Below are positions 9,916-35,214 of a stretch of DNA of 64,000 nt, piece by piece. The notes below the pieces were generated by a model. The model searched no databases. It worked only from the letters and a program-made list of their open reading frames with translations, and was not told where the DNA came from. A program made the position numbers and the translations under genes. The stretch is from IMG/VR virus record IMGVR_UViG_3300017991_005548, positions 1-64,000 of that record. The stretch is one strand, 5' to 3'. The first letter of the stretch is position 1. Every line of letters starts with the position of its first letter.

Positions 9916-9942
9916 AAAAAAGCCCCCAAAAAATGGGGGCTT
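9916..9942 (-). terminator. Intrinsic terminator ending the Thr/Lys tRNA operon
   Basis: AAGCCCCCA-TTTTT-TGGGGGC followed by U6 on the minus strand. Confidence 0.8.
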
Positions 9943-9996: not shown

Positions 9997-10084
9997 TGGT
10001 GGAGCCGACAGGATTCGAACCTGCGCGGAGCTTGCGCTCTCTTGATTAAAAGTCAAGTACCTTCAGCCACTCGGTTACGACTCC
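9997..10084 (-). tRNA. tRNA-Lys(UUU) with a long variable arm (88 nt)
   Basis: GGAGTCG/CGGCTCC acceptor, CTTGA-CTTTTAA-TCAAG anticodon arm, GAGC-GCAA-GCTC variable hairpin, GCAGG-TTCGAAT-CCTGT T arm, ACCA end. Confidence 0.85.
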
Positions 10085-10086
10085 AA

Positions 10087-10962
10087 TTAAATTATTCCAT
10101 AACTTCTCGCCCATTTACGAATTGTATTACATGTTACCCCATATTTTTTACCAATAGCAACCCAAGTCATCTTATCTATCATGTCTTTTAGCTCTTCTTT
10201 AGATGGGCGATTCTGAACCTTACGACGACTTGGCAACTTACCATTACATGAAGTACATCTGGTGCTTCTATGCTCAATTGCTTTGTTGCAATCTACACAT
10301 CTATTTGTTTTTTCTTCCTCTAGCTTTTTAACATATTCCTCTATGGTTGTTTCAATTTTACAGTTTGCACATTTGTCCTTAATGACATTTTTGATCTGGG
10401 CAACAACCATTTTTCTATGCTTTTTGTCAAGCTTATTGTATTTAGACCACCTGATTCTATATACGAACCATCCATTGTCTTCCAAATATTTATTTCTACG
10501 CTTATCACTTTTTATTATTTTTTCATCGCAATAATGTTGCTCTCCATCGATTTCTATGTCTATTTTTCTTATTGGATCAGAGAAATCGAGTTGATATGTG
10601 CCAACTCTGTGATGGTATATTAACTCTATATTCTCATTTCTAAATAACTTCTCAAAATATTTTTCTGGGTACGACATTCCTTTGCTATGATGGTTAAGTA
10701 AATACGGGACTTTATCTGGATTTTCTTTAAGAAACTTTCTTCTTGCCTTACTAATCTTTTCTTTTGTTTTCTCTGACAGTTTTCTGGGTTTTAGTTTACA
10801 ACTTAATTTCATGGCACTCGATCTTTCTCTTGATACAAAATCTCCTCGTTTTCTGGCAGACGTAATTGCCGCCATACTAACTCCAAATTCCTCAATAACT
10901 TCTCTCCATGTATGTCCTTCGTCATAAAACTTCTGAATTTCAATCCAATTGTATCTAGGCAT
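10087..10962 (-). CDS. Free-standing putative homing endonuclease (DUF559/Vsr-like PD-(D/E)xK with HTH and Cys4 zinc modules)
   Basis: YQLDF...IDIEIDGEQH...DKRRNKYLEDNGWFVYRIRW; NUMOD-like LSEKTKEKISKA; CVDC...CTSC; lies between two complete tRNA genes. Confidence 0.75.
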   Translation of the reverse strand: MPRYNWIEIQKFYDEGHTWREVIEEFGVSMAAITSARKRGDFVSRERSSAMKLSCKLKPRKLSEKTKEKISKARRKFLKENPDKVPYLLNHHSKGMSYPEKYFEKLFRNENIELIYHHRVGTYQLDFSDPIRKIDIEIDGEQHYCDEKIIKSDKRRNKYLEDNGWFVYRIRWSKYNKLDKKHRKMVVAQIKNVIKDKCANCKIETTIEEYVKKLEEEKTNRCVDCNKAIEHRSTRCTSCNGKLPSRRKVQNRPSKEELKDMIDKMTWVAIGKKYGVTCNTIRKWARSYGII

Positions 10963-11051
10963 AACAACACTCCTTTTTAGTTGTATTGTTATGTATTTCT
11001 AGATAAGTATAGCAACATCCTTTGAGAAATTGGACTTTTATGGTTCAAATT

Positions 11052-11128
11052 TGGTGGGCTGGGTGGGACTTGAACCCACGACCAACGGAGTAAGAATCCG
11101 CGACTCTATCCAACTGAGTTACCAACCC
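11052..11128 (-). tRNA. tRNA-Lys(CUU)
   Basis: Cloverleaf; anticodon arm GCGGA-TTCTTAC-TCCGT; ACCA end. Confidence 0.9.
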
Positions 11129-11133
11129 ATTTT

Positions 11134-11208
11134 TGGTGGACCTGGAGAATTTTGAAATCTCGACCAACGGATTAAAAGTCCGCGACTCTGCCTCTGAGTT
11201 ACAGGTCC
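11134..11208 (-). tRNA. tRNA-Lys(UUU)
   Basis: GGACCTG/CAGGTCC acceptor; GCGGA-CTTTTAA-TCCGT; atypical T arm GAGAT-TTCAAAA-TTCTC; ACCA end. Confidence 0.85.
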
Positions 11209-11263
11209 AAAGTGAGAGAGCATATCTACTTCGAAGACTTAACAATATGCTTTTAAACTCTCT

Positions 11264-11339
11264 TGGAGCCGCCTGACGGAATTGAACCGACATCCTCTGA
11301 GTACAAAACAGAGATAATAATCCTTTATACTAAGGCGGC
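11264..11339 (-). tRNA. tRNA-Thr(UGU)
   Basis: GCCGCCT/AGGCGGC acceptor; loop TTTGTAC closed by a U-U pair; TCCA end. Confidence 0.85.
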
Positions 11340-11345
11340 GTCATA

Positions 11346-11417
11346 AGCCCTTGCCCAGCAACGATCTGGGACTAATCCCTTACGAGGGGATAGTTCTGCC
11401 AATTAAACTACAAGGGC
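11346..11417 (-). tRNA. tRNA-Thr(CGU), CCA not encoded
   Basis: GCCCTTG/CAAGGGC acceptor; ATCCC-CTCGTAA-GGGAT; atypical T loop ATCGTTG. Confidence 0.75.
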
Positions 11418-11445
11418 ATCTTACTTAAATTTTCAAAGATCATTC

Positions 11446-11520
11446 TGGAGCATCCAATCGGACTCGAACCGATAACCCCCTCCTTACCATGGAGGAATTC
11501 TACCATTGAACTATGGATGC
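11446..11520 (-). tRNA. tRNA-Thr(GGU)
   Basis: GCATCCA/TGGATGC acceptor; CCTCC-ATGGTAA-GGAGG; TCCA end. Confidence 0.9.
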
Positions 11521-11528
11521 ATAGGCAC

Positions 11529-11562
11529 AAAAAAACCCGAAGTCTTTATCGGACTTCGGGTT
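11529..11562 (-). terminator. Attenuator terminator upstream of the Thr/Lys tRNA genes
   Basis: 9-bp stem CCCGAAGTC/GACTTCGGG, 7-nt loop, U7 tract ending 8 nt before tRNA-Thr(GGU). Confidence 0.9.
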
Positions 11563-11584
11563 GGTCAGTATCTTTACGTTCAGG

Positions 11585-11662
11585 TCAAGACAACAAACCT
11601 CCCGAAGCCACGCGTTTCTTCGTGGTTTTGGTTGTTTTAGTTGTCTTGGTTGTAGCGTACAT
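11585..11662 (-). CDS. Thr/Lys-rich attenuator leader peptide MYATTKTTKTTKTTKKRVASGGLLS (25 aa)
   Basis: AAGGA SD upstream; 13 consecutive Thr/Lys codons; contains antiterminator segment GCTTCGGG (11601-11608) complementary to the terminator 5' arm. Confidence 0.85.
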   Translation of the reverse strand: MYATTKTTKTTKTTKKRVASGGLLS

Positions 11663-11734
11663 TTTTAAAATTCCTTATCTTCATTTAATTGAAGTTTATG
11701 AGCATTGTTCATTAAACTCGCTCAAGTTACCCCT

Positions 11735-11762
11735 ATTATAAGCTATGTTTGGAGCTTTTCAA
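11735..11762 (-). promoter_or_regulatory. sigma70-type promoter of the Thr/Lys tRNA operon
   Basis: TTGAAA-N16-TATAAT followed by AGGGGTAAC. Confidence 0.75.
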
Positions 11763-11786
11763 GCGCAACTGAGATTTTTTTTGAAA

Positions 11787-12995
11787 TTATGGACAAGTCT
11801 CGTTTCCAACAGTAGGAACGTATGATGGCGCACCTTTCCATCCTGCCCAAGTATCAGTTCCAACACCATTAGCTTGGAGTGCATCCCACTTAATGGTCAA
11901 ATTACCATATGACCCCAAACTAGAAGCATCAAATGTAACGAATGTAAAACTGCTATTGGGAATAACTGTGGTTGAAGTTAGTGTACCTACATAAACTCCA
12001 GCAGAAATCCTGTTGTTATATTGAGAGTTTGTTCCCAAATTGATCCATACATGATGGTAAATATTGCTTCTTAAATAACAAGCAACTTTTTGAAATGTGG
12101 AATAAGATCCGCCAATTCTTAATTGCATTGATCCATTATAAGTGTTATTCCAAGATTCTGCTGGACTATTGCTATACGTACCTGGACATATTATTTTTGA
12201 TTCTCCATTGTACCATGAGACGAATCCTGTCCCATCATGCAACCAGTTAATGCTGTTTGCCGTTCCAGTCCAACAAAGAGTAACTTTCATTCTAGGATCT
12301 GAATTCCCCCCACACATAATTTTGGGCAATGGAGGTCCATCACTTTCTGAAGAACTTGAGGAACTATCTGGAGGTAAACCAGAACTGGAAGATTCAGAGT
12401 ATGAACTCTCAGAGTATGAACTGGAAGATTCAGAGTATGAAGATTCAGAATATGAACTGGATGATTCAGAATATGAACTTTCGGAGTATGAACTGCTAGA
12501 CTCTGAAGAATTGCACCCTCCTTCACATACTTCTATTACTTCTCCCTCTGTGTAATTTAGATATGCTCCTGGAGTTGCTAAGACAATTGCATCCTCACTA
12601 CCCCAATTTGTATAAGTCCCTTCATCAAATCCATTAATACAGACAGTTCCCTCTGAGATATTGCCAAAAAGAGTTGGTGGAGAAAACCAAAGGGTATTTT
12701 TAACTTCTGATATCCCACCAATTGTTACGTTAACACATTCAATAGAGCTTGAAGAAGATGGTGCGGCCAAAGATTCTGAAGAAGATGATCCTCCACCAAA
12801 AGACTCTGAAGATTCAGACAAAAGGCTCTCGGAGGAAGAGCTTGCGAGTTCACAAGCCAAACAGGAATCAAAAGTACCCTCAATCTCAAATGGGAAAGCA
12901 TTTCTTGGTTTTGTTGTTTCACCAGAGAATTTGTAACATTGACCATCTATCTTTATAGATGATCCTTGATAATCATCAAATACTTTGCTTGACAT
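11787..12995 (-). CDS. Cys-module family protein with Ser/Tyr repeat linker
   Basis: N-terminal DYQGSSIKIDGQCY...FDSCLACEL module; SYSESS(S) repeats; middle Cys-bounded domain shared with 23521..24087. Confidence 0.8.
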   Translation of the reverse strand: MSSKVFDDYQGSSIKIDGQCYKFSGETTKPRNAFPFEIEGTFDSCLACELASSSSESLLSESSESFGGGSSSSESLAAPSSSSSIECVNVTIGGISEVKNTLWFSPPTLFGNISEGTVCINGFDEGTYTNWGSEDAIVLATPGAYLNYTEGEVIEVCEGGCNSSESSSSYSESSYSESSSSYSESSYSESSSSYSESSYSESSSSGLPPDSSSSSSESDGPPLPKIMCGGNSDPRMKVTLCWTGTANSINWLHDGTGFVSWYNGESKIICPGTYSNSPAESWNNTYNGSMQLRIGGSYSTFQKVACYLRSNIYHHVWINLGTNSQYNNRISAGVYVGTLTSTTVIPNSSFTFVTFDASSLGSYGNLTIKWDALQANGVGTDTWAGWKGAPSYVPTVGNETCP

Positions 12996-14523: not shown

Positions 14524-15510
14524 TTATGGTGGACTACTCTTATATGGATGTCCAGTTGGTAAACTTCCTTCTTGGCCCCACTTCCAAGCGAGATATCCCT
14601 CAACCTCTTGACGCTCTGTGTTTGTTAGTGCCTTTCTATAAACAAGAACCTCTGCATAATCTGCTTGCATGAAGTTACTATATCCCTCATTCAGTGCGCC
14701 CAAGGTAAGTGTAGAGCTATAGTTCGGAATAGATGTGCTAGTTTCTGTACTTGTTTTACTTAAGCTACCGTCCACATACAATTTTGATCTTTGAGAAGCG
14801 ATCAAAGATCCGTCAAATACTGTTTCCATCATATAAACCGTTCCACTACTGAAAGTTTGAGGATCGGAATCCCACCTATCCCCAATACCGTTAATATCGA
14901 TATATACATAACTATCATTCCAATAGAACATGCCATAAGCGTATTCCCCGAATTCGCCAAAACCAGTGCGCTTAGCGATAATGCCATCTGGATCTCCACT
15001 TAAAGTTGGTTTTAGCATTACCAATATTGTTAATCCTGAAGTTCCGTCTAAAGTGTCATCGTCTGGAACAACCAATATGTCTGAAACTCCATCAAATCTA
15101 ACGACATATTTTCCATCTAAGGCATTTGAGACATATGTGGGTTGATCAGTACCCGTACCTTGAGCCGCATGGTTTTCATTCCCTGATTTATCGTCCCATT
15201 GACTAACGAATCCTCCTGATTCAGTAATCGTATCAGAGTCGTCTGCATCAAGCCACAGAACTAAATTTGATATATCGGACGGCATAAATCCATCTGAACT
15301 CGAAGAACTACTTGAAGATACGTTGTTGAAACTTTCAGAGCTTTCTGAAGAACTTGATTCTAGAGCACACTCTAGACAAGAATCAAAAGTTCCACCTACT
15401 TCAGATGGATCAGTATCAACTGGGGCCAAGGTTTCTCCTACAAAAAGATAACATTCTCCATTTATTTTAATTGAAAGCCCTTGGTAATCTTGTAAAATCT
15501 TATCTGCCAT
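14524..15510 (-). CDS. Cys-module + poly-Ser + LamG/concanavalin-A-like domain (array copy 6)
   Basis: LWLDA...VSQWDDKSGN...FDG...EGYLAWKWG pattern typical of phage LamG-like fibre domains. Confidence 0.8.
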   Translation of the reverse strand: MADKILQDYQGLSIKINGECYLFVGETLAPVDTDPSEVGGTFDSCLECALESSSSESSESFNNVSSSSSSSSDGFMPSDISNLVLWLDADDSDTITESGGFVSQWDDKSGNENHAAQGTGTDQPTYVSNALDGKYVVRFDGVSDILVVPDDDTLDGTSGLTILVMLKPTLSGDPDGIIAKRTGFGEFGEYAYGMFYWNDSYVYIDINGIGDRWDSDPQTFSSGTVYMMETVFDGSLIASQRSKLYVDGSLSKTSTETSTSIPNYSSTLTLGALNEGYSNFMQADYAEVLVYRKALTNTERQEVEGYLAWKWGQEGSLPTGHPYKSSPP

Positions 15511-16469
15511 TATGGTGCCGCTCCTTTGTATGGATGTGTTAACGGTAAATTATCTTCTAGCCCCCATTTCCAAGCAAGATAGCCTTCTAATTTTTGTCTG
15601 GTGTCAGTTGTTATATCGTTCTCAATAACGATTATCTCGCAAATGTATCCATCCAAACGTTCGGTTGCTCTGTCAGCGACTCCCATTCCTTGAGAAGCGG
15701 TATTTGAAGTATTTCCTGCGGTTTGAAATGCTGTTGGCCCAGAAAGCGTTCCGTCATAAGTCGAATATACTTGTGCATTAGCCCAATCTGCAATAGAAAC
15801 AAACATATGTGGGTCTGTATCGGTTGTTTGCCAAAAAATTTCTAAATAGGAATCACTATCTAATCTTCTACCAGCAGTACCCAGGTCTCCAGCTTCAACC
15901 TGATGCTTTAATCTTGTGGAACCACTATTCTGATAAACCTCAAATAGAATATTTGTCCCAGTAATAACATCCTTCTTGTGAACAGTTAAAATCATAGCAG
16001 AAGGAACGTTTTGTAGATAAGCACCCGACCCGATAGCAATACTGTCATCTCCATCAAAGTCTATTACATTTAAGCCATTTTGCGTTGTGGCACCAGTAGT
16101 TGGCTGTTCGGCACCAGTTCCTTGAGTTAAATGATAATCATTTCCTGATTTATCATCCCATTGACTAACACTCCCTCCAGAATCAGTAATGGTATCTGTA
16201 TCAGCCGCATCATACCAACCTAGCAATGTCAATTCTGCTGGGGTGAAACCTCTACTTGATGAGCTACTTGATGAAGATACATTGTTAAAACTTTCAGAAC
16301 TTTCTGAAGAGCTAGATTCTAAAGCACACTCTAAACAAGAATCGTAAGTTCCACCTATCTCTGAAGGGTCAGTGTCAACTGGAGCAGTCGTTTCCCCTAC
16401 AAAAAGATAACATTCTCCATTTATCTTTATTGAAGGTCCCTGATATTGTTGTAAAATTTTATCTTCCAT
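15510..16469 (-). CDS. Cys-module + poly-Ser + LamG-like domain (copy 5)
   Basis: Same motif pattern; TAATG stop/start overlap. Confidence 0.8.
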   Translation of the reverse strand: MEDKILQQYQGPSIKINGECYLFVGETTAPVDTDPSEIGGTYDSCLECALESSSSESSESFNNVSSSSSSSSRGFTPAELTLLGWYDAADTDTITDSGGSVSQWDDKSGNDYHLTQGTGAEQPTTGATTQNGLNVIDFDGDDSIAIGSGAYLQNVPSAMILTVHKKDVITGTNILFEVYQNSGSTRLKHQVEAGDLGTAGRRLDSDSYLEIFWQTTDTDPHMFVSIADWANAQVYSTYDGTLSGPTAFQTAGNTSNTASQGMGVADRATERLDGYICEIIVIENDITTDTRQKLEGYLAWKWGLEDNLPLTHPYKGAAP

Positions 16470-17434
16470 TATGGTGGCGCTCCTTTATATGGATGATCTG
16501 ATGGTAAATTATCTTCTAGACTCCATTTCCAGGCCAAATAACCTTCGAGTTTTTGTCTTGTATCCAAAGTCTCGTCTTCAACAACTATTAACTCCCCAAT
16601 AGCTCCATCAAAACGTTTATTTCCTCCCCCAACATCTCCATCCCCGATCTCAAATAACTGAGTTGTATCATTGGGAATAGAAGTTGGGTTCGTTTGAACA
16701 GACTCAGCTTGCTCAACCCCATTCACAAAACATCTAGCATCTCCATATGTCCCACCCTGAGGTCTTGTCATTACAGTTATGGTAGGGGTACTAAGAGTTA
16801 CTGGTGTATATTTGTCATTACCATTATTATATCTCCAAGCCCATCCATCAGAACCAACAGACACCTTAATTGAATTTGTGACATTTCCACTAAAACCACA
16901 CCAACGATCATCTGAAGTTACACTACTATCAACCACTATGACTACGGCAATCATAACATCAGGGTTAGCTCCAAGACCAAGTCTTGAATTTATAGATAAT
17001 TCTTTTTGTGGGAAATCTAGAATATTTAACCCATTTATATTTCTTGTTCCTGTAATTGGTTGATCTGATCCGCTTCCTTGAGTTACATCATAATTATTCC
17101 CAGACTTGTCGTCCCATTGACTTACATTTCCACCTGAATCCGTTATGGTGTCAGAATCTGTTGCGTCCCACCAACCAACAGGACTGACATCTAATGGATT
17201 AAACCCTCTACTTGATGAAGAACTGCTAGAAGAAACATTATTAAAACTCTCCGAACTGTCTGAGGAACTAGAAGTACTTGATTCCAATGTACACTCAAGA
17301 CAAGAGTCAAAAACCCCACCTATTTCAGATGGATCTGCATTAATTGCTTCAGTTGTCTCTTCAACAAATAAATAGCATTGTCCATCTATCTTAACTGAAG
17401 CCCCCTGATAATCTTGAAATATCTTAACTGACAT
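16469..17434 (-). CDS. Cys-module + poly-Ser + LamG-like domain (copy 4)
   Basis: Start revised to MSVKIFQ at 17434 by paralog alignment and TAATG overlap. Confidence 0.8.
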   Translation of the reverse strand: MSVKIFQDYQGASVKIDGQCYLFVEETTEAINADPSEIGGVFDSCLECTLESSTSSSSDSSESFNNVSSSSSSSSRGFNPLDVSPVGWWDATDSDTITDSGGNVSQWDDKSGNNYDVTQGSGSDQPITGTRNINGLNILDFPQKELSINSRLGLGANPDVMIAVVIVVDSSVTSDDRWCGFSGNVTNSIKVSVGSDGWAWRYNNGNDKYTPVTLSTPTITVMTRPQGGTYGDARCFVNGVEQAESVQTNPTSIPNDTTQLFEIGDGDVGGGNKRFDGAIGELIVVEDETLDTRQKLEGYLAWKWSLEDNLPSDHPYKGAPP

Positions 17435-18315
17435 TATGGAACCCACTTATTATTCAAATAATTAATCACAGTATCTTGCTCAGAACTTGTCAAATCTTCG
17501 TTATAGAAAATCAATTCGCAAAGAGCCATTTTTAAATACCTAACATTCCCTGAGATAGGATCACCACCTATACGGATGTTGTTATAAACTGATCCTGCAA
17601 TTGTTGAACCTCTCTGAAACTTAGAAACTTGTATCTGATCAAAAGTAAAACTAGCTGATGCAACTCCATTAACTTCAAAATCACCATCTGTATAACAAAA
17701 ATCATTGGCATCATTTGTTGGTCTCCAAGCCGCAACAGTTCCACTAGCTAGTCGAATGTTACCTCTATCGCCTGCATTTGAGACCAAACCACTACAACAT
17801 CCAGTATTTGGCTGACCAGACTTTACAATGACTGCCGCAAAGACCCACTCCATATCTGTAACATTAATAGAATTCCTTTGCAGAAAATCATTTGAACCAT
17901 CAAAAGTTAAAGTGTTAAGATTATTTTGAGTTTCCAATTCTGTTTGAGGCTGATTCGACCCAGTTCCCTGAGTTACATGGAAATTGTTTCCTGATTTATC
18001 ATCCCATTGACTAACAAATCCACCTGAATCGGTTATAGTGTCCGTATCAGATGCGTCATACCACAAAGACAAGCCTGGGATATCATATGGGAAGAAGCCA
18101 CTTGATGACGAACTGGAAGAAGAAGTATTTCCTATGCTTTCAGAACTGTCTGAAGAACTTGATTCTAGAGCACACTCTAAACACGAACTAAAAGTCCCAC
18201 CTACCTCTGATGGATCGGTATCTACTGGAGCAGTTGTTTCTCCTACAAAAAGATAACACTCTCCGTTTATCTTAATTGAAGGACCTTGATATTCTTGTAA
18301 GATTTTATCATCCAT
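17434..18315 (-). CDS. Cys-module + poly-Ser + LamG-like domain (copy 3)
   Basis: Start revised to MDDKILQ at 18315; TAATG overlap. Confidence 0.8.
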   Translation of the reverse strand: MDDKILQEYQGPSIKINGECYLFVGETTAPVDTDPSEVGGTFSSCLECALESSSSDSSESIGNTSSSSSSSSGFFPYDIPGLSLWYDASDTDTITDSGGFVSQWDDKSGNNFHVTQGTGSNQPQTELETQNNLNTLTFDGSNDFLQRNSINVTDMEWVFAAVIVKSGQPNTGCCSGLVSNAGDRGNIRLASGTVAAWRPTNDANDFCYTDGDFEVNGVASASFTFDQIQVSKFQRGSTIAGSVYNNIRIGGDPISGNVRYLKMALCELIFYNEDLTSSEQDTVINYLNNKWVP

Positions 18316-19181
18316 TATATGCCCCACTTATCAGACAAATAATCTTCCACTTGTAATCTCTCACTAGTCGTTAAAGCTCTATTGTATATTATTATTTCTC
18401 CAATATCACCATTAAAAGTCTCCCCAATACGCAAACTATAATTAGATGGGTTGGCAAAATCATTTGTTGTTAAGTCGCTGAACTGGGAGGTTCCATTCAT
18501 CCAAACATTCTGGCCAACACCATCTTCATTCCTCATGGTAAAATAATTCCAGTTATTACCTCCAGTCCAAGACCACTGACACCTTCCTCCAGCACTCCAT
18601 TCTCCAAAATCGAAATACCCATCACCAGTACTCCACGTCAAGTGACATCCAATTCTATTTACTTCTCTTGGATTTGAAAAAATTGGATAGCTTGCTGTAG
18701 TTACGCTTCTTTTCTGAACGATGAACATTGTTATATCATCTTGAGGCCATGTATATGGATCTTTATCCATGTAATCTCCCCCATCCCATCTAATAATATT
18801 ATTGCCATTTTGAACATTTGTTTGATAGGTTGGTTGTAACGAACCAGTCCCTTGAGTAACATCATTGTCATTACCTGATTTGTCATCCCATTGACTAACA
18901 CTGCCAGAGGATTCTGTTATGGTATTAGAATCAGCCGCGTCAAGCCACAATTGAATGTCTGCAATATCATATGGGAAGAAACCACTCGAACTGGAAGAAG
19001 AACTTGAATCCAACGAACTTGATGAACTTTCTAGAGTACACTCCAAACAAGAATCATAGGTCCCTCCAATCTCAGATGGGTCAGCATTAATACTTTCAGT
19101 TGTTTCCTCAACAAATATATAACACTGCCCATCGATTTTAACAGAAAAGCCTTGATAATTTTGAAATATCTTAACTGACAT
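18315..19181 (-). CDS. Cys-module + poly-Ser + LamG-like domain (copy 2)
   Basis: Start revised to MSVKIFQ at 19181; TGATG overlap. Confidence 0.8.
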   Translation of the reverse strand: MSVKIFQNYQGFSVKIDGQCYIFVEETTESINADPSEIGGTYDSCLECTLESSSSSLDSSSSSSSSGFFPYDIADIQLWLDAADSNTITESSGSVSQWDDKSGNDNDVTQGTGSLQPTYQTNVQNGNNIIRWDGGDYMDKDPYTWPQDDITMFIVQKRSVTTASYPIFSNPREVNRIGCHLTWSTGDGYFDFGEWSAGGRCQWSWTGGNNWNYFTMRNEDGVGQNVWMNGTSQFSDLTTNDFANPSNYSLRIGETFNGDIGEIIIYNRALTTSERLQVEDYLSDKWGI

Positions 19182-20104
19182 CAGATTCCCCACTTATCCA
19201 TTAAATAATTTTCAACAGTAATTCTTTCACCATCTGTTAAATCTCTATCATAAATAACAACTTCTCCACAATAGAACCTGGCATAAGCATTGTTCCCTCG
19301 ATTAACTCCTAATCTAATTCTACTTGAAAAAAGACTAAAAGTATCATTTCTAGTTGAGCCTGTTTGACTACCGTTTAAAAAGGCTTTTTGTTGAGATCCT
19401 GTATTCCAAGCTGTAAAAAGATATCTAGTATTATTAACTGGACTTCCATATGTTATCTGCCTTTGAGTTGTGGTAGCATCATGATATCTATAGTCCATAT
19501 TAGCTGACCCTGCAAAACTTAACTGTAATGCTCCAGCAAAATTAAATACATTATGACTACTATATATACCATCATTAGTGTCAAATGGAGAGAACGCAGT
19601 AACAGCCATAAAAATTGTAAATGCTCCTGATGGACTTGCAGATAAGTTTTCCATATCATCATCAACTCCATCAAAAAACATACAGCCAAGGCCATTAAAA
19701 CCAGAAGAAAGATATTGAGGTTGTTTGGTTCCAGTCCCTTGAGTTAAATCCCACCCTCCAGTCCATTTGTCATCAATTTGGGAAATAGATCCTGCTGACT
19801 CTGTAATCGTATTAGAATCTGATGCATCATACCAAGCATAAAGGTTGTTGATGTCATATGGGTAGAAACCACTTGAGGAAGAGCTACTGGAAGAAACATT
19901 ATTGAAACTCTCAGAACTTTCCGAAGAACTAGAAGTACTTGAAGAACTAGACTCTAATTCACATTGAAGACAAGAGTCGTAAATTCCACCAATCTCAGAT
20001 GGGTCAGCATTAATTGCTTCGGTAGTTTCCTCAACGAATATATAACACTGCCCATCGATTTTAACAGAAGAGCCTTGGTAATCTTGAAATATCTTGACTG
20101 ACAT
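19181..20104 (-). CDS. Cys-module + poly-Ser + LamG-like domain (copy 1)
   Basis: Same N-terminal module; AWYDA...FDG...ENYLMDKWG. Confidence 0.8.
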   Translation of the reverse strand: MSVKIFQDYQGSSVKIDGQCYIFVEETTEAINADPSEIGGIYDSCLQCELESSSSSTSSSSESSESFNNVSSSSSSSSGFYPYDINNLYAWYDASDSNTITESAGSISQIDDKWTGGWDLTQGTGTKQPQYLSSGFNGLGCMFFDGVDDDMENLSASPSGAFTIFMAVTAFSPFDTNDGIYSSHNVFNFAGALQLSFAGSANMDYRYHDATTTQRQITYGSPVNNTRYLFTAWNTGSQQKAFLNGSQTGSTRNDTFSLFSSRIRLGVNRGNNAYARFYCGEVVIYDRDLTDGERITVENYLMDKWGI

Positions 20105-24097: not shown

Positions 24098-25516
24098 TTA
24101 AACTGCTCCACCATCATAAACTGCTCCCCATTCTGATCCAATTGCAGTTCTCCCTGCTTCAGCGGCACCTCCCGCAGTGTATTTACTGTTGCCGAACGTT
24201 GGGATTCCTGCGGCAGGTTTTAACGATTGACCTCCCCATGAAATCAGAAGTGCATCATAGTTAGCAGTAGACAGGGCATCGTAAGGAGTGCCACGAGCTA
24301 TTTCTGCCATGAACTCATGTATTACTGTGACGTTAGAAACATCCCAGTTGCTGAGGTCTTGGTCAAAATTAGGTTGGAACCTAATGGCTTGTTGAATATC
24401 AGTAACGCTTGATGTATCCCACACCCCTATCGGCTGATTGAATACGCCTCTACTGGCTAAAGTTGCACCTAGCATATTTGCCAGTGTTGTCACGTTACCC
24501 ATGTTTGTAAAGTTTTGGATCGCGCCATTGAATAAAGGACAAGTATTAAACATACCTGAGCAGTCAGTGACACTATTCATGTCCCAGTTCCAATTTGCGC
24601 TTGCGCCTGTCATTCCAGTACATCCTGCGAACATCCATGAACAATCCGAACACGCCGACAAATCAGGCACATCAGATGCGGTGATTTCAAGGCCACTACA
24701 ACTCGAAAATGCGTTAGCCATCTGAGGCCACTGATACGTTCCCCACTGTCGAATTTCTTTGAGCTTTGATGCATATCCCCATCCTGAAATCCAACCAGAA
24801 GAAGAAGAGAAGTCAACAGACATTTCATACTCGGTATCTGCGTCAGGATAGATATGTTCGATTATAAATCCACCAGTAACCGTTTGTTGGTTTCCATCAC
24901 CCCAATCAATATATGTTGTGTTAGGGTTACCTATGTAAATTTGAACTGTTTTATTCTCTCCTGAATCCCACAATGCTTTAAAAAGATCACCCTCAGGGTA
25001 AGAACTGCTTGACGAACTTGAAGTTGAACATGGATCATCACAAACCTCTACAACTTGTCCAACCGAATACTTACTTGCCGCACCTGGCTCAACTAAAGAA
25101 ATACCAATCCAAAGACCAACATTTATCTCTCCAATATCATTTCCATTTACACAAACAAAACCTGAAAAAGTATTTAATGGAGAAGTTGATTCAAAGCCTA
25201 ATACATTTCCTACAATGGTTAATATTGAAACAGTGGCACAACCTTCTGAACTTGATGAAGAAACATTTTCTTCACTTTCTGAAGAATTGGAACTAGAAGA
25301 ACTGCTAACATTACCAATTGATTCAGAAGATGATGATTGAGTACTTTCTGATGAACTTGATTCAATAGCACATTCGAGACAATTATCAAAAACTTCTTCT
25401 ATTTCGCTTGGGCTTGAATTAACAGAACTAGTTGTTTCACCGATCCATTTATAACAAACCCCACCTATTTTAATTGATGCTCCTTGATAATCGTCAAATA
25501 TTTTTTCTCTACCCAT
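24098..25516 (-). CDS. Cys-module + poly-Ser + PKD-like + BspA/DUF285 leucine-rich repeat protein
   Basis: YIDWGDG; FNQPIGVWDTSSVT, FDQDLSNWDVSNVT repeats; LSTANYDALLISW. Confidence 0.8.
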   Translation of the reverse strand: MGREKIFDDYQGASIKIGGVCYKWIGETTSSVNSSPSEIEEVFDNCLECAIESSSSESTQSSSSESIGNVSSSSSSNSSESEENVSSSSSEGCATVSILTIVGNVLGFESTSPLNTFSGFVCVNGNDIGEINVGLWIGISLVEPGAASKYSVGQVVEVCDDPCSTSSSSSSSYPEGDLFKALWDSGENKTVQIYIGNPNTTYIDWGDGNQQTVTGGFIIEHIYPDADTEYEMSVDFSSSSGWISGWGYASKLKEIRQWGTYQWPQMANAFSSCSGLEITASDVPDLSACSDCSWMFAGCTGMTGASANWNWDMNSVTDCSGMFNTCPLFNGAIQNFTNMGNVTTLANMLGATLASRGVFNQPIGVWDTSSVTDIQQAIRFQPNFDQDLSNWDVSNVTVIHEFMAEIARGTPYDALSTANYDALLISWGGQSLKPAAGIPTFGNSKYTAGGAAEAGRTAIGSEWGAVYDGGAV

Positions 25517-25591: not shown

Positions 25592-25673
25592 TGGTATGGG
25601 GGGTGGGACTTGAACCCACAGAAATTCACTTGTTTATAAGACAAGCCGCTTAACCAAATTTGCGTACCCCCAC
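25592..25673 (-). tRNA. tRNA-Ile(UAU)
   Basis: CTTGT-CTTATAA-ACAAG anticodon arm; GTGGG-TTCAAGT-CCCAC; ACCA end; 9-nt variable region. Confidence 0.8.
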
Positions 25674-25689
25674 ACAGGTAAGAAGTTTT

Positions 25690-25796
25690 GGGGAGGTGGG
25701 GAGGCTCACTGGGGTAAGTGGCTTCTTATTATATTGCCGTCCATTGTGTCAGCCCGTTCTCCTTCTAACGGGTGTTTCCGATGACATGGCATCCCC
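25690..25796 (-). ncRNA. GC-rich structured RNA of unknown class inside the tRNA operon
   Basis: Nested pairings GGGGA/TCCCC, CCAT/ATGG, TGTCA/TGACA, CCCGTT/AACGGG; abuts tRNA-Val. Confidence 0.5.
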
Positions 25797-25798
25797 TT

Positions 25799-25875
25799 TG
25801 GTGGGCAGTACAGGACTCGAACCTGTCACGACCTCGGTGTAAACGAGGCATTCTAGCCAAATGAATTAACTGCCC
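25799..25875 (-). tRNA. tRNA-Val(UAC)
   Basis: CCTCG-TTTACAC-CGAGG; ACCA end. Confidence 0.9.
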
Positions 25876-25939
25876 AGTAAAATCATATTCGAAATACTTC
25901 TTTCATATTATAACCTAAATTTCCTTTAGTTCAACAAAC

Positions 25940-26019
25940 AAGCTGATTTATTTTTTGAAGGGTTTGAACCTTCTAGATGGTGTAAGCATCGTTAACCTGT
26001 TTTTTGCTGTAATCAGCCT
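25940..26019 (-). ncRNA. tRNA-mimic RNA with a Val(UAC) anticodon hairpin and a T arm inside a non-acceptor closing helix
   Basis: AGGCTGATT/AATCAGCTT closing stem; GATG-CTTACAC-CATC; GAAGG-TTCAAAC-CCTTC; no CCA. Confidence 0.55.
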
Positions 26020-26026
26020 TTATTTT

Positions 26027-26103
26027 TGGTGGACCTACACGGATTCGAACCGAGATTTCCTCCCTGCCAGAGAGGTGTGTTAGCCATTAGTCACTATAAG
26101 CCC
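26027..26103 (-). tRNA. tRNA-Ala(GGC)
   Basis: G3:U70; CCTCT-CTGGCAG-GGAGG; ACCA end. Confidence 0.85.
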
Positions 26104-26137
26104 TTTTTGTTTCATAACTCGTTGATAATTAACGACT

Positions 26138-26216
26138 TGGTGGAGACGGTCGGAATCGAACCGACCACATGCTGGTTGCAAACCAGTATCGCCAAAGCCT
26201 TGGTACATGCGCCCCC
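26138..26216 (-). tRNA. tRNA-Ala(UGC) with aberrant D arm
   Basis: G3:U70; loop TTTGCAA; canonical T arm; ACCA end; D region CATGTACCAAGGCTTTGGCGAT is non-canonical. Confidence 0.75.
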
Positions 26217-26221
26217 AAGTT

Positions 26222-26443
26222 TTAAACGCCTAATTCGTTATCCTCAAAAAACACAACATCCGAAATCGGTTCTAGTCTTTCGTATGTCTCATTCCATATT
26301 TCAATTTCTTCATCCGTCAATGCAACCTTGTCATTTTTACAGTTCCATCGATCTTTGTCTGGACACCAACAACTGCCTTCTGCATGTATCCATTGTGCCA
26401 TGCATTTCTCAAACATTTTCTTGTAATCTACGTTGTCTTCCAT
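26222..26443 (-). CDS. Small hypothetical protein inside the tRNA operon
   Basis: MEDNVDYKK start after a GGAG SD. Confidence 0.6.
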   Translation of the reverse strand: MEDNVDYKKMFEKCMAQWIHAEGSCWCPDKDRWNCKNDKVALTDEEIEIWNETYERLEPISDVVFFEDNELGV

Positions 26444-26480
26444 CGTCTGTCTCCAGTATCTGGTCATTTATACGGACATC

Positions 26481-26504
26481 ATGGCCACATAAATGGCCAC
26501 ATAA
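26481..26504. repeat. 12-bp tandem duplication (ATGGCCACATAA)x2
   Basis: Seen directly, just 3' of tRNA-Ala(UGC). Confidence 0.8.
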
Positions 26505-26508
26505 GTCT

Positions 26509-26585
26509 TGGTGGAGCATAAGAGACTCGAACTCTTGACATCCTGCTTGCAAAGCAGGTGCTCTAGCCATCTGAGCTAATGCCCC
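26509..26585 (-). tRNA. tRNA-Ala(UGC)
   Basis: Canonical cloverleaf, G3:U70, CCTGC-TTTGCAA-GCAGG, ACCA end. Confidence 0.92.
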
Positions 26586-26646
26586 AAAATACGGGATACC
26601 TAAGCATTGCCCGTTTTTGAATGGATGTCGAAACATTGCCATTCTT

Positions 26647-26739
26647 TGGTGGAGAAGATTGGAGTCGAACCAATTAAAATTGTTTGCCGAAGAGAGCCTT
26701 ATAACAAGCTCAGTTTGCCCTCCGCAGGGCATCTTCTCC
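26647..26739 (-). ncRNA. tRNA-like RNA: intact acceptor stem, T arm and CCA, non-tRNA core
   Basis: GGAGAAG/CTTCTCC-ACCA; ATTGG-TTCGACT-CCAAT; internal hairpins GCCCT/AGGGC and GAGCTT/AGGCTC; no 7-nt anticodon loop. Confidence 0.65.
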
Positions 26740-26776
26740 AGTTGTTTTAGAACTCTGTTCGTTAAAACATCGTTCT

Positions 26777-26853
26777 TGGTAGTTGGGACAGGACTCGAAC
26801 CTGCATCCTCCGATATGTAAAAACGGTGCTCCGCGCAATTAAGCTACCCAACC
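26777..26853 (-). tRNA. tRNA-Val(UAC), divergent
   Basis: Loop TTTACAT; U-U mismatch in the anticodon stem; D loop lacks GG; canonical T arm; ACCA end. Confidence 0.75.
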
Positions 26854-26879: not shown

Positions 26880-26910
26880 AAAAAAAGCCCTGTCATTTCT
26901 GACAGGGCTT
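26880..26910 (-). terminator. Attenuator terminator upstream of the Val/Ala/Ile tRNA genes
   Basis: 9-bp stem GCCCTGTCA-GAAA-TGACAGGGC followed by U7. Confidence 0.9.
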
Positions 26911-26932: not shown

Positions 26933-27019
26933 TCATCCAGAAAGAGCAGAAAAGCCCTGCCCGTCTGCGACTACCGCGACGGCTACTACTGCTATGGCTA
27001 TTTCTACTCTCTTTTTCAT
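26933..27019 (-). CDS. Val/Ala/Ile-rich attenuator leader peptide MKKRVEIAIAVVAVAVVADGQGFSALSG (28 aa)
   Basis: GGAG SD 9 nt upstream; 12 consecutive Ile/Ala/Val codons; contains antiterminator segment GCAGGGCTT (26952-26960). Confidence 0.85.
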   Translation of the reverse strand: MKKRVEIAIAVVAVAVVADGQGFSALSG

Positions 27020-27047
27020 AAAACATATCTCCAGTTACGTTGCCCCT

Positions 27048-27075
27048 ATTATAAGGCATCTATTTGGCTTTTCAA
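27048..27075 (-). promoter_or_regulatory. sigma70-type promoter of the Val/Ala/Ile tRNA operon
   Basis: TTGAAA-N16-TATAAT followed by AGGGGCAAC; near-identical to 11735..11762. Confidence 0.75.
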
Positions 27076-27100
27076 GCTCGAATCGAAAATAAATTCGTCT

Positions 27101-30947: not shown

Positions 30948-31688
30948 TTACCTTTGGATATTTGGCCCACCCCTATCATGATTGAGATGATATTGAGGAA
31001 GAACATTTAACGGTCTTCTGCCACCCATATGAACTCTAAACTGTCGGTCAGATTTCGTTCTTCTCCAAACATCTCTAAGTCTGTGGCAGTATCTCCCTAC
31101 TTTCGTTCCATCTTCCTGAACATCACCCTTCTCTTTGATTGCCTCAACTCTTGCCAATTGAAAATATCCAGCACAGGTTTTTCTTCCGCTAATCCATTTC
31201 TTTGGCCAATCTTTGGGAATTTGAGCCACATCCTCGATTACACAAGGATAAACTCTCTCGTCATTTTCGAAATATTCTATGCAAAAGGGAATATCTAAAG
31301 AATGACGATCAGCCCCAAGAACTTTTGTTTCGTCTTTATAATCATCACTCTCTAGCTTCTTCTTAATATCATCAAAAAACATTGGATCATACACCATATC
31401 AGAATCGGCAAACAAAATCCAATCAGCTTCTGTTGCTCCTGCCCTCATATTTCGAGGAATAGCCCTATTAGGAGCCTGTTTAGGGGTCAATTCGACATCA
31501 AGTATGTTCAAACCCTTTTCTTTAAAAAAATCAATAACCTGAGGAGTTGTTGGATCTCCATTTTCAGGGGTATAAGAAATGCTAACCAGTATGTCTGGTA
31601 TATCTCCTTTCTGTTGCAATATCGAACTGAGCATCCAACACAATCTTCGTTGATATGAATGACAATGTATACAAATTTCTAATTTCAT
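30948..31688 (-). CDS. GT-A fold glycosyltransferase (GT2-like)
   Basis: RN...ADWILFADSD; GYFQL; HLNH. Confidence 0.7.
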   Translation of the reverse strand: MKLEICIHCHSYQRRLCWMLSSILQQKGDIPDILVSISYTPENGDPTTPQVIDFFKEKGLNILDVELTPKQAPNRAIPRNMRAGATEADWILFADSDMVYDPMFFDDIKKKLESDDYKDETKVLGADRHSLDIPFCIEYFENDERVYPCVIEDVAQIPKDWPKKWISGRKTCAGYFQLARVEAIKEKGDVQEDGTKVGRYCHRLRDVWRRTKSDRQFRVHMGGRRPLNVLPQYHLNHDRGGPNIQR

Positions 31689-31697
31689 AAAAACTCC

Positions 31698-32351
31698 TTA
31701 AGCTTTAACAAACCACCAAGATCTGATTACACCTCCAACAGCATGGATCTTATAACCATATCTCGCTCCATAATAATCTACTACCGTTTTGACATGATAA
31801 TCCAAACCTCTCCCCCAATAATCTTTCATGCCAGAATTCTCACCATCTTTATAATCATGACCTGCTACCACTCCACCCGTTCTAACTTTAGGAGTCCATG
31901 CATAGATATCATTAAATATTCCTTCCAAACTGTGGTCGCCATCGATGTATACAAAATCAAGAAGGCCATCTGGGATTTCCTGATAAACCTCAATACTAAA
32001 TGCCTTGACTAATTCAACCCTTCCAGCATCAATAAATTCTTTCAGATGATTCTCACAATCTTTTTGTCGATTACTTCCATCCTTGTCATACTTTTCTTTC
32101 CCATAACCAGATCCAAAATCATCAATCCATGGATCAATACAATAGTATTTCTGCAAATCTGATTTAGAAACCATGTGGTGAGAAAACGTCCCCTTGTCAA
32201 CCCCTATTTCTGCTCCGAATTGATATTTCATATCTTTGCAAAGCTTAGGAAAAAAGTGATCTCGGTACTTATTTTTTCCTTTCTCTTTAAGGATCTTACT
32301 CGCGACTTCTTCAACTTGATTGATTATTTGTTCATTCCTGTACTTCACCAT
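31698..32351 (-). CDS. Class I SAM methyltransferase (Methyltransf_24-like)
   Basis: AEIGVDKG, IDPW, DFVYIDGDH, GGVVAGHDY; start revised to MVKYR after GGAG. Confidence 0.85.
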   Translation of the reverse strand: MVKYRNEQIINQVEEVASKILKEKGKNKYRDHFFPKLCKDMKYQFGAEIGVDKGTFSHHMVSKSDLQKYYCIDPWIDDFGSGYGKEKYDKDGSNRQKDCENHLKEFIDAGRVELVKAFSIEVYQEIPDGLLDFVYIDGDHSLEGIFNDIYAWTPKVRTGGVVAGHDYKDGENSGMKDYWGRGLDYHVKTVVDYYGARYGYKIHAVGGVIRSWWFVKA

Positions 32352-32383
32352 AGAAAACTCCAGCATTATTGTATTCGAATTTA

Positions 32384-33175
32384 TTATACAGTTTCGTCGT
32401 AGATCCCACCCCATCCATTTGGGTTGGCCTTATAGGGTCTTGTCCCCCTCATCGCCTTGGTAAGAATCTTCTTGTTCTTCTCCTGACAAGCCAGATCATT
32501 TTTTAAATTTGGCTTAGAATGTGGTTGATGAAAAAGATTTATGCTTTCCATTGTCTCTCCAAGCCAAATAACCTTGGCTCCTGATCGCCCCATTCTTGTA
32601 AAAAGATCAAAATCTTCAGAACCCCACCCTACAAAAGCTTCATCAAAACCTCCGACTTTATGCCATTGATCAATGTGAGCACACTGACAGCCGCCAGCAG
32701 TAGTTCTTTTTTTGATTCTCCCCCGTCTACATGAAGCTAAATTTTCGAATGGGTCAAGTCTCCCTTTGTATATCTGATTAGCTATTTTTGGTTTCCAATA
32801 CATAGTCCTAGACTCAATGAAAACATTTGGAGCAACTCTCTTCAAAATCTCATCAACAAAAGTTGGCCCGAAAAAGATATCAACATCAGTGGTCATGATG
32901 TATGGAGTTCTAGCATTTCTAATTCCCACATTGTTCATCTTCGCTCTTTCAAATTCTTCCCCAAGAGGCTCTTGAACAATTCTAATCAATGGTTCGCATT
33001 CTCTGGATTCAAAAAACTTCTTAAGTTCATCATAATTCTTACTCCCACCATCAGCTATAACCACCTCAAAATCTTTATTGGTTTGCTTTTCTAATGATAA
33101 TAAGAAAAACTTTGTGATATTCTTTTTAAGGTCTAACCGATCCCTATTAGAAGCGGCTATAGTCAAGGTTTTCAT
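32384..33175 (-). CDS. GT2/GT7C-like glycosyltransferase
   Basis: VIADGGS, TDVD, GGFDEAFVGWGSED. Confidence 0.85.
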   Translation of the reverse strand: MKTLTIAASNRDRLDLKKNITKFFLLSLEKQTNKDFEVVIADGGSKNYDELKKFFESRECEPLIRIVQEPLGEEFERAKMNNVGIRNARTPYIMTTDVDIFFGPTFVDEILKRVAPNVFIESRTMYWKPKIANQIYKGRLDPFENLASCRRGRIKKRTTAGGCQCAHIDQWHKVGGFDEAFVGWGSEDFDLFTRMGRSGAKVIWLGETMESINLFHQPHSKPNLKNDLACQEKNKKILTKAMRGTRPYKANPNGWGGIYDETV

Positions 33176-33909: not shown

Positions 33910-33920
33910 AAGTTTCTCCT

Positions 33921-34652: not shown

Positions 34653-34653
34653 C

Positions 34654-35214
34654 TTAATCCTTATCTAAATCACTTACTTTGAAAAGCCAACTAGTATCAA
34701 TGAATTTCTTATGTGGTATCCCTAAAACTTCATGAACAGCCTTCCTAACAGAATCTCTCTTAATATCATGGCCAGTAATATATCCAGTTTTCTTGACTTT
34801 TGGCAACCACTTTATAATATCATTCTTAACGGCTTCATATTGATGGTTGCCGTCAATATATACCAAATCTAAGCTCTCATCTTCGAACTTATCAACTGCC
34901 TCATCTCCAGGCATTTTGTATTTTTTAAGTTTATCTTTGTGTGGAGCCATTTTTTGATCGAACATCTTCTCTACAAGCTCCATTGGCCTGCTTTTAGAAG
35001 CGCCATCACTATCATCATAACCATTCTGCCAAGGGTCAATGGCATGAATCATTTTGATATTATTGTCAGATGCAAAAATTGACGTACTATCTCCTGAATA
35101 ACAACCAATTTCTACCATAACAATATCTTTCATATCACTAACGTATTTAATCATATTCTTAAGGCCGTTTATGAGTTTGGCCTTTCTTCGCATTATATTC
35201 CTACTCATTTCCAA
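34654..35214 (-). CDS. Class I SAM methyltransferase (Methyltransf_24-like)
   Basis: VEIGCYSGDS, IDPW, DLVYIDGNH, ITGHD. Confidence 0.85.
   Translation of the reverse strand: MEMSRNIMRRKAKLINGLKNMIKYVSDMKDIVMVEIGCYSGDSTSIFASDNNIKMIHAIDPWQNGYDDSDGASKSRPMELVEKMFDQKMAPHKDKLKKYKMPGDEAVDKFEDESLDLVYIDGNHQYEAVKNDIIKWLPKVKKTGYITGHDIKRDSVRKAVHEVLGIPHKKFIDTSWLFKVSDLDKD

Follow-up and report, generated by a model that had tools for sequence, protein, structure and literature searches.

The stretch of DNA analysed here (the window) comprises 64,000 nucleotides, positions 1 to 64,000 of IMG/VR virus record IMGVR_UViG_3300017991_005548, and carries two arrays of tRNA genes, each preceded by a promoter, a short leader open reading frame (ORF) and an intrinsic terminator. 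The source is a huge phage of approximately 524 kb with a G + C content of about 38%, for which assemblies of 476, 296, 524 and 524 kb from different data sets are available. Its genome contains four such leader-tRNA units, for Thr/Lys (unit 1) and Val/Ala/Ile (unit 2), both within the window, and for Phe (unit 3) and Glu/Pro (unit 4), approximately 1.1 and 6.7 kb past position 64000, respectively. All 19 tRNAs found in the approximately 100 kb that were read belong to these four arrays, and no additional tRNAs were seen in approximately 16 kb upstream of unit 4 or approximately 6 kb beyond the start of the window. The leader of each unit, a putative attenuator of the tRNA genes behind it, is the subject of this report. 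Across the units the three assemblies that were compared are identical, hence there was no polymorphism to use.

Unit 1 is located on the minus strand, as are all other features of the window described below. A promoter scan placed its promoter, CTTGAAAAG-N14-TATAAT-A-GGGG-T-AAC, at 11726-11763, with the -35 hexamer at 11762-11757, the -10 hexamer at 11740-11735 and a G-rich stretch immediately 3' of the latter. The TTGAAA-N16-TATAAT sequence (11762-11735), which had already been pointed out in a first-pass annotation of this DNA, matches the consensus at 11 of 12 positions and is the sole site of this quality on the minus strand between 9000 and 13500. The Shine-Dalgarno sequence and the 25-codon ORF claimed in the same annotation were present as well: AAGGA at 11672-11676, 9 nt 5' of the ATG, and leader ORF 1 at 11585-11662, which encodes MYATTKTTKTTKTTKKRVASGGLLS and ends in a stop codon. 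Codons 4-16 of this leader (11615-11653), the control codons, are 13 successive Thr or Lys codons (ACA three times, ACC three times, ACT, ACG, AAA three times and AAG twice), so that all four Thr codons and both Lys codons occur, as had been noted.

ARAGORN and Rfam identified the same tRNA genes as the first-pass annotation: tRNA-Thr(GGU) (11446-11520), tRNA-Thr(CGU) (11346-11417), tRNA-Thr(UGU) (11264-11339), a first copy of tRNA-Lys(UUU) (11134-11208), tRNA-Lys(CUU) (11052-11128) and a second copy of tRNA-Lys(UUU) (9997-10084). This last gene, which closes the unit, is 88 nt long, has a long variable arm and is preceded by a 291-amino acid ORF (10087-10962) with a DUF559/MTES_1575-type endonuclease core and helix-turn-helix domains, probably a homing endonuclease. 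A terminator found by the terminator scan (9920-9942) ends the unit. The anticodons of the array cover the codon set of the leader, with 12 of the 13 control codons being the exact Watson-Crick complement of a downstream anticodon.

The leader of unit 1 can adopt two mutually exclusive helices. Its intrinsic terminator (11529-11562) has a stem with the 5' arm at 11562-11552 and the 3' arm at 11544-11534, followed by seven T residues; the U7 tract of the first-pass annotation was therefore found, but its 9-bp stem became one of 11 pairs (6 G-C, -16.6 kcal/mol), since the scan takes in the outer A-U pairs. Only 8 nt separate this terminator from the first tRNA. The 8-bp complementarity that had been described between GCTTCGGG (11608-11601) and the terminator 5' arm was confirmed, and the best duplex is even 9 bp long (GGCUUCGGG / CCCGAAGUC, -16.2 kcal/mol). 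The antiterminator 5' strand GGCUUCGGG (segment 2, 11601-11609) is situated within the ORF, directly past the control codons. In minimum free energy (MFE) and constrained folds a 1:2 (anti-antiterminator) hairpin (11586-11648), absent from the first-pass annotation, in which control codons at 11648-11621 pair with 11612-11586, sequesters this strand in the absence of a stalled ribosome. The leader as a whole is far more stable than its shuffled counterparts (MFE z = -4.9).

Unit 2 has the same organisation. Its promoter, CTTGAAAAG-N14-TATAAT-A-GGGG-C-AAC (27039-27076; -35 to -10 at 27075-27048), was found by the promoter scan, and the Shine-Dalgarno sequence GGAG (27032-27029) is located 9 nt 5' of the ATG of leader ORF 2 (26933-27019), which encodes MKKRVEIAIAVVAVAVVADGQGFSALSG followed by a stop codon. 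An upstream ATG (frame MFYEKESRNSH..) was dropped as the start of this leader, because the Shine-Dalgarno sequence is merely 2 nt away from it. Control codons 5-18 (26966-27007) of this leader (VEIAIAVVAVAVVA) specify Val, Ala or Ile at 13 of 14 positions, and both Ile codons are AUA, which is read by the anticodon UAU of the tRNA-Ile of this unit. The antiterminator 5' strand GGCAGGGCUU (26952-26961) forms a duplex of -18.5 kcal/mol with the 5' arm of the intrinsic terminator (26880-26910), which consists of an 11-bp stem (26910-26885) and a T run. The array itself (25592-26853) contains five tRNAs, namely a first tRNA-Val(UAC) (26777-26853), tRNA-Ala(UGC) (26509-26585), tRNA-Ala(GGC) (26027-26103), a second tRNA-Val(UAC) (25799-25875) and an 82-nt tRNA-Ile(UAU) (25592-25673), together with a 73-amino acid ORF (26222-26443) and two tRNA-like elements. 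The element at 26138-26216 is a degenerate tRNA-Ala(UGC) with G3-U70, which also gives a 28-bit match to the tmRNA model, and the element at 26650-26740 gives a weak tRNA-Sec-like match (23.5 bits). Both were missed at the default settings of the tRNA caller.

In unit 3 the 14-residue leader MNNLNNIFRFFSHL is followed by two terminators and two tRNA-Phe genes, and in unit 4 the leader MNNYMYIREPEREEPPAFGRRSADL (..IREPEREEPP..) is followed by two terminators and Glu, Pro, Glu, Pro, Glu and Pro tRNAs. One of these, a tRNA-Glu(UUC) of 91 nt (L014 13146-13236, minus strand), has a long variable arm; in this gene and in the 88-nt tRNA-Lys(UUU) of unit 1 the variable arm is 5-6 bp long. Long variable arms are normally confined to Leu, Ser and Tyr tRNAs.

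All four units share the promoter motif CTTGAAAAG-N14-TATAAT-R-GGGG-Y-AAC, and those of units 1 and 2 have in common CTTGAAAAGC-N13-TATAATAGGGG-Y-AAC. Each promoter contains TTGAAA-N16-TATAAT, with 11 of 12 matches to the sigma-70-type consensus. The motif occurs at exactly four sites in this genome and in no other contig in scans of viral and metagenome collections. The G-rich stretch R-GGGG-Y-AAC after the -10 hexamer (11726-11735 and 27039-27048 in the window) was kept in all four promoters, which in this respect recall ppGpp-responsive bacterial stable-RNA promoters, where G + C-rich discriminators occur. The spacing between Shine-Dalgarno sequence (AAGGA or GGAG) and ATG is 9 nt in all four units, and from this site and the ORF (14-28 codons) the leaders are predicted to be translated. 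The terminators end approximately 5-30 nt before the first tRNA. Transcription of the tRNAs from a promoter 3' of the terminator, which according to the first-pass annotation would contradict attenuation, was not indicated by the promoter scans: in none of the four units was a promoter-like site found between terminator and first tRNA. A nucleotide search of 50,697 phage records produced scattered tRNA matches only.

The leaders match their own arrays. When each leader was compared with each tRNA set, the matching residues numbered 13/24, 14/27, 3/13 and 7/24 on the diagonal (units 1 to 4) and 0-3 off the diagonal, and the true assignment of leaders to arrays had the top score of all 24 permutations. 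A scan of small ORFs upstream of tRNAs, as proposed in the first-pass annotation, recovered all four units with enrichment p values of 9e-12, 1.6e-7, 1.9e-5 and 3.5e-3; for unit 1 this reflects 13 of 13 codons in a two-amino-acid set (binomial scan, p ~9e-12). Only 2 of the 625 small ORFs in the window contain an 8-codon stretch of Thr and Lys codons, leader 1 being one of them. Over the four units, 28 of 36 control codons are exactly complementary to a downstream anticodon, versus 20.9 expected from the codon usage of the phage (p = 0.004), and the control codons span all isoacceptors. The same scan of 22 unrelated viral loci with 134 tRNAs, among them the tRNA regions of Vibrio phage nt-1, Stenotrophomonas phage CM1 and Yersinia phage fHe-Yen9-04, revealed no comparable leader unit. 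The best candidate in these control loci (p 1.4e-4) is 222 nt away from its tRNA, unlike the compact leader-tRNA layout, and the tRNA arrays of the control loci mix amino acids. Scans for coding of TTKTTKTTK and for the common Shine-Dalgarno-MNN start gave no tRNA-linked match among the matches listed, which were to unrelated sequences.

These numbers bear on the alternative that there is no regulation at all and that chance ORFs and ordinary terminators or insulators precede tRNAs which are transcribed by leaky read-through or from unrecognised promoters. Small ORFs and terminator-like hairpins are indeed frequent, and the promoter and terminator calls are consensus matches only. However, the ORF is enriched for the amino acids of the downstream tRNAs in all four units, and in Glu/Pro and Arg-type units of related phages described below, whereas candidates from the control loci never came near the scores of the units. 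Antiterminator complementarity as good as that observed was reached by 2-7 of 1000 shuffled sequences per unit (dinucleotide shuffles; 5/1000 for unit 1 and 2/1000 for unit 2); it is thus significant in all four units, and it is maintained by compensatory change. Moreover, a strong promoter facing an unregulated terminator 8 nt from a tRNA would be senseless. We regard an absence of regulation as hardly conceivable.

For each leader the effect of a ribosome was modelled by holding 28 nt single-stranded at each codon and refolding the RNA. On the full leader of unit 1, the predicted probability of the terminator was 0.98 when the RNA was free or a ribosome was placed at codons 16-26, and fell to 0.02-0.43 for stalls at codons 3-14. 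In addition, transcripts were folded that had been cut after the terminator 5' arm and before the 3' arm. In these cut transcripts a stall on the control codons left the terminator 5' arm paired into the antiterminator in all four units (0.84-0.99), and this pairing dropped to 0.00-0.3 when the ribosome had moved on. In bare RNA it was 0.38 for unit 2 and 0.00 for unit 3. The folding with and without a ribosome footprint that the first-pass annotation had called for thus predicts what it expected: the antiterminator prevails when a ribosome is stalled on the control codons, and the terminator when the ribosome is further along. Units 3 and 4 each have a first terminator whose 3' arm can pair with the 5' arm of the second (-15.1 and -13.8 kcal/mol), which gives a relay of alternative hairpins (L014 8025-7966 and 13669-13609, minus strand). 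The stall model of both units contains helices 2:3 and 4:5, which suggests that one stall can disarm both terminators.

A full homologue of the translation initiation factor IF3 (L283 14796-15308), both domains of which score above the Pfam cut-offs, is present approximately 0.9 kb upstream of the Glu/Pro promoter. Homologues of this protein with 50-71% identity were found in other metagenome contigs, unlike the neighbouring proteins, which are lineage-specific. Six distinct contigs (IF3 50-59% identical) keep the order IF3, 174-amino acid gene, small gene, gap and DHH protein, and in all six a leader, a terminator and Glu/Pro tRNAs are found in the gap. These six related phages contain orthologous Glu/Pro and Phe units. 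The Glu/Pro leaders of the relatives read MRNYITIELPEQEPPAPGWRNT, MNYAITTEQPEQEPPVGDWRM, MRNYITIERPEQEPPAPCWRPLKV, MNNYITIERPEQEPPAPSWRTLGL, MNYYINNQEPEPEEPPALSWRIVD and MNTRIQFPEHNEEPPVKNWRVDV; kept across them are E-P-E-x-E-E-P-P and the antiterminator strand. The conserved Trp-Arg of these leaders (UGG AGG) is the antiterminator strand CUGGAGG, which pairs with the terminator arm CCUUCAG.

In 4 of the 6 relatives a further unit was found, with a leader for six amino acids (..IIDMHIRRWDR..) and with Arg(CCU, UCU, ACG), Trp, Asp, Ile, Met and His tRNAs downstream. These Arg-type leaders have 10-12 successive codons limited to Asp, His, Ile, Met, Arg and Trp, to which Val or Cys is added where Val or Cys tRNAs occur. 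A pattern scan of the viral collection did not find the Arg-type leader, so that the 476-kb contig of the phage is without that exact leader. One relative shows the same coupling in its Phe unit: the leader (..NFSRFFS..) has gained a Ser (UCU codon) and the array consists of tRNA-Ser(AGA) and tRNA-Phe. Between the Phe-unit terminator and tRNA-Phe, three relatives have a conserved element of about 55 nt, GGCGATATGGTGTAA..GGTC.CGCAC....GCCAC (L288 20190-20250, L292 13320-13375, L285 15548-15600). In some relatives the ATG of the Phe leader is merely 6-7 nt past the -10 hexamer (L285 15400-15440; L288 20040-20082), and these leaders may be translated from leaderless mRNAs.

Covariation was read from the duplexes of each sequence, as two rows of the MAFFT alignment had the 3' arm one column out of place. 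In the Glu/Pro units, CUGGAGG / CCUUCAG of the relatives is CAGGAGG / CCUUCUG in the phage of the window, an exchange of U-A for A-U. In one relative the arm becomes CCCUCUAGC, the 3' arm changes accordingly and the antiterminator is kept by wobble pairing. For segment 2, the 5' arm and the 3' arm, the Arg-type units have UUGGG / CCCAA / UUGGG in one phage and UAGGG / CCCUA / UAGGG in three. Two mutually exclusive helices predict this, namely that both partners of the shared arm mirror a change. Past the control run the peptide varies freely at the compensated positions (SFGLL versus SHRAS), which indicates that selection there is on the RNA.

This pattern also concerns the possibility of a function in trans, exerted by the leader peptides or by the leader RNAs after termination, with their place before the tRNAs being incidental. 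A trans role has been reported for one bacterial leader peptide, peTrpL (PMC7298713), and termination would yield leader RNAs of 130-200 nt that form stable hairpins. Since it is the pairing and not the peptide that is conserved outside the control run, with SFGLL and SHRAS accompanied by compensating RNA changes, and since the composition of the peptide tracks the tRNA set, we consider an action in trans extremely unlikely.

Taken together, it is very likely that a ribosome-mediated (leader-peptide) attenuator controls every tRNA array of this huge phage, each array forming one transcription unit. The four units, the position-dependent folds, the orthologues and the compensatory changes all support the proposal of the first-pass annotation, an attenuator of the thrL/hisL/trpL type with tRNA genes as its output. 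In the mechanism that we infer, the strong sigma-70-type promoter would give a short leader RNA, on which a ribosome would load at the Shine-Dalgarno site and read the ORF of 14-28 codons that is built around the codons of the downstream tRNAs. With quick decoding, the ribosome would come to cover or pass the antiterminator strand, located within the ORF or at its end; the terminator would form and transcription would stop a few nucleotides before the first tRNA. When any cognate charged tRNA is scarce, the ribosome would stall on the control codons, the 1:2 hairpin would be broken and segment 2 would pair with the terminator 5' arm. With the antiterminator formed, RNA polymerase would enter the tRNA genes and the tRNAs would be excised from the read-through transcript. 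The new tRNAs would relieve the stall, so that the loop would close on tRNA supply, codon by codon. With several amino acids per leader, such a switch would follow OR logic, which is established for the multivalent thr and ilv leaders.

Several points weigh against this interpretation. The whole mechanism is deduced from sequence, and the sigma-70-like promoters are the ground for assuming that transcription and translation are coupled and that the host RNA polymerase is used. The bare RNA of unit 4 already favours the antiterminator (0.98 on the cut transcript). At full-length equilibrium the terminator of units 2 and 3 prevails wherever the ribosome is placed, and in unit 4 the terminator loses to stalls on codons 1-9 only; the switch of units 2 and 3, and partly of unit 4, is therefore seen mainly on cut transcripts, which makes the argument a kinetic one. 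Promoter-like sites within arrays 2 (25934-25907) and 4 could drive the distal tRNAs constitutively. Among the relatives, the Phe leaders of two have only two Phe codons, and the footprint model was blurred for several orthologues and added no evidence. Finally, an orthologue of the Thr/Lys unit was looked for via homologues of the neighbouring 1075-amino acid protein and was not recovered among those listed, because the gene order around them differs.

The behaviour of unit 4 would also fit a general sensor of translation stress, in which read-through increases whenever translation or its coupling to transcription fails (e.g. owing to inhibitors, a shortage of ribosomes or host shut-off) and codon identity is secondary. 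Untranslated Glu/Pro RNA already prefers the antiterminator on the cut transcript, as stated above, and any antibiotic that targets ribosomes raises the expression of a cyanobacterial tRNA array more than 100-fold (PMC8421152). However, the leaders are codon-specific, fit their own arrays and covary with array content among the phages, and the untranslated RNA of units 1-3 favours the 1:2 hairpin and the terminator (3/3 at full length, units 2 and 3 on the cut transcript). We therefore regard such a sensor as improbable.

To our knowledge, the targets of attenuators in all described cases are enzymes of amino acid biosynthesis or aminoacyl-tRNA synthetases. Every sequence-level feature of the mechanism of the trpL/thrL/hisL/pheM class was found in the phage units, the choice of the antiterminator as predicted in silico, and only the regulated genes differ, being tRNAs and not biosynthetic or synthetase genes. 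The output of tRNAs instead of enzymes is the point of novelty and not a failure of the mechanism. Leader-peptide attenuation has been described for biosynthetic and synthetase genes (e.g. PMC4007540). In agreement with the first-pass annotation, which knew of no such attenuator with tRNA output, none before tRNA genes was found in the full-text literature, a coverage outside which most subscription journals fall.

The closest resemblance is to thrL (RF00506) and the ilv leaders, which likewise have regulatory codons in succession within a short ORF that is translated, alternative 1:2, 2:3 and 3:4 hairpins and an intrinsic terminator. They also respond to several amino acids per leader, as the phage units would: thrL senses Thr and Ile, and the ilv leaders sense Ile, Val and Leu. 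The phage units differ in that the element is viral, the output is tRNA genes and the predicted loop closes on tRNA supply. Rfam Thr_leader (RF00506) gave 18.4 bits on unit 1 (11533-11664) and Phe_leader (RF01859) gave 15.6 bits on the Phe unit, neither significant against the gathering threshold of 55; each is a full-model match of the family with the matching amino acid, below threshold in both cases.

With pheM/pheST of E. coli the phage units have in common that the target is a component of the translation apparatus. The pheM peptide is 14 residues long, as is the phage Phe leader MNNLNNIFRFFSHL, and MN and IFRFF are shared between the latter and pheM of the E. coli K-12 record; no DNA similarity between the two was detected. 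The genes regulated in the phage units would be tRNA-Phe, with tRNA-Ser in one relative, and no synthetase; in addition, there are two interlocked terminators in the phage of the window. Directly after the Phe unit of one relative a 90-amino acid ORF with a PheRS alpha N-terminal domain was found (PF02912, 55.7 bits; L287 19859-20131), which looks like a remnant of a captured pheS. The position of this ORF suggests descent of the Phe unit from a captured cellular pheM-pheS locus, which is plausible.

A T-box or other known RNA family was rejected as the identity of the leaders, as no significant Rfam match was obtained; for the T-box there was no match in the window at the gathering threshold and none at E <= 10 in the leader regions of units 1, 3 and 4. 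T-boxes likewise respond to the state of one particular tRNA pool by controlling terminator read-through upstream of translation-related genes, but they bind uncharged tRNA directly, without translation, whereas the phage units have a leader ORF. Anabaena sp. PCC 7120 has a supernumerary tRNA array, the inducible trn operon, which is silent unless translation is impaired (PMC8421152); the authors considered such induction unprecedented for bacterial tRNA genes (PMC8421152). The trn operon differs from the phage units in that a repressor at direct repeats in the promoter is proposed, leader, attenuation and terminator being unmentioned, and in that its 23 functional tRNAs are mixed and not sorted by amino acid (PMC8421152).

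Which event would trigger the switch during infection is a separate matter. Candidate triggers are a mismatch between codon demand and the host tRNA pool, loss of host tRNAs in infection, and tRNA-cleaving defences. PARIS AriB reportedly cuts tRNA-Lys(UUU) and tRNA-Thr(UGU), and escape of phage T5 from AriB requires its own Lys, Thr and Asn tRNAs (bioRxiv 10.1101/2025.02.04.636281). The phage Lys and Thr copies that replace lost host tRNAs in T5 resemble unit 1 in this respect, and in the accessible parts of these reports the tRNAs themselves are described and no sensing switch before them (PMC11464382, bioRxiv 10.1101/2025.02.04.636281, PMC10264068). The units could accordingly be dedicated counter-defence switches, with the same mechanism but with cleavage of host tRNAs by PrrC or PARIS AriB as the trigger and nuclease-resistant phage tRNAs as the product. 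Unit 1 groups exactly Thr and Lys, matching the reported targets of AriB (bioRxiv 10.1101/2025.02.04.636281), and the odd bodies of the 88-nt tRNA-Lys(UUU) and the 91-nt tRNA-Glu(UUC) could evade nucleases. Against this, the design gates at least 13 amino acids in the clade (T, K, V, A, I, F, E, P, R, W, D, H, M), a breadth that far exceeds any single known nuclease, and the control codons span all isoacceptors, beyond the known targets. As the same architecture gates so many other amino acids, a general supply-on-demand loop is more economical, and we consider a dedicated counter-defence switch possible but rather unlikely. Of the PrrC/AriB trigger suggested in the first-pass annotation, the fit of the Thr and Lys grouping with AriB targets thus stands, the gating of many other tRNA sets speaks against it, and it stays speculation.

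With supply on demand as the preferred explanation, the findings probably describe a clade of huge phages with a codon-resolved, closed-loop tRNA supply from amino-acid-sorted operons, in which the first attenuators with a tRNA product have evolved and at least the Phe unit seems to stem from a captured pheM-pheS locus. Such a phage would gauge decoding speed in any host or defence state and make tRNAs on demand only; one leader would sample up to six amino acids, and in some units relayed double terminators would tighten the gate. The purpose of phage tRNAs has been debated for fifty years, the proposals being codon compensation, host shut-off and evasion of defences that cleave tRNA. A switch that responds to slow decoding of the matching codons would reveal what selection acts on in these tRNAs, and leader-peptide attenuation would then reach from amino acid metabolism to the homeostasis of the decoding machinery. 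Multivalent leaders for six amino acids, tandem terminators that interlock and leaders whose codons follow the content of the array would be new design features. The units would be compact natural sensors for single tRNA species and could possibly serve as reporters.

Some further observations concern the surroundings of the units. A 186-amino acid protein adjoining unit 2 has no homologue among 5.8 billion proteins. Two large ORFs, at 11787-12995 and 24098-25516, share the N-terminal motif FDDYQGxSIKIxGxCYKxxGETT; the former is Ser-rich and situated just upstream of unit 1, and the latter is found immediately past array 2 and contains DUF285 repeats. Every long ORF of the window is on the minus strand, and the GC skew is negative throughout. 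Long back-to-back runs of similar-sized ORFs (approximately 200-410 amino acids), possibly tandem paralogues, are present at 14524-20104, 30948-37481 and 39671-53088. An EF-Ts homologue is encoded in a relative (L292 1077-1859), and the region looks like a translation island.

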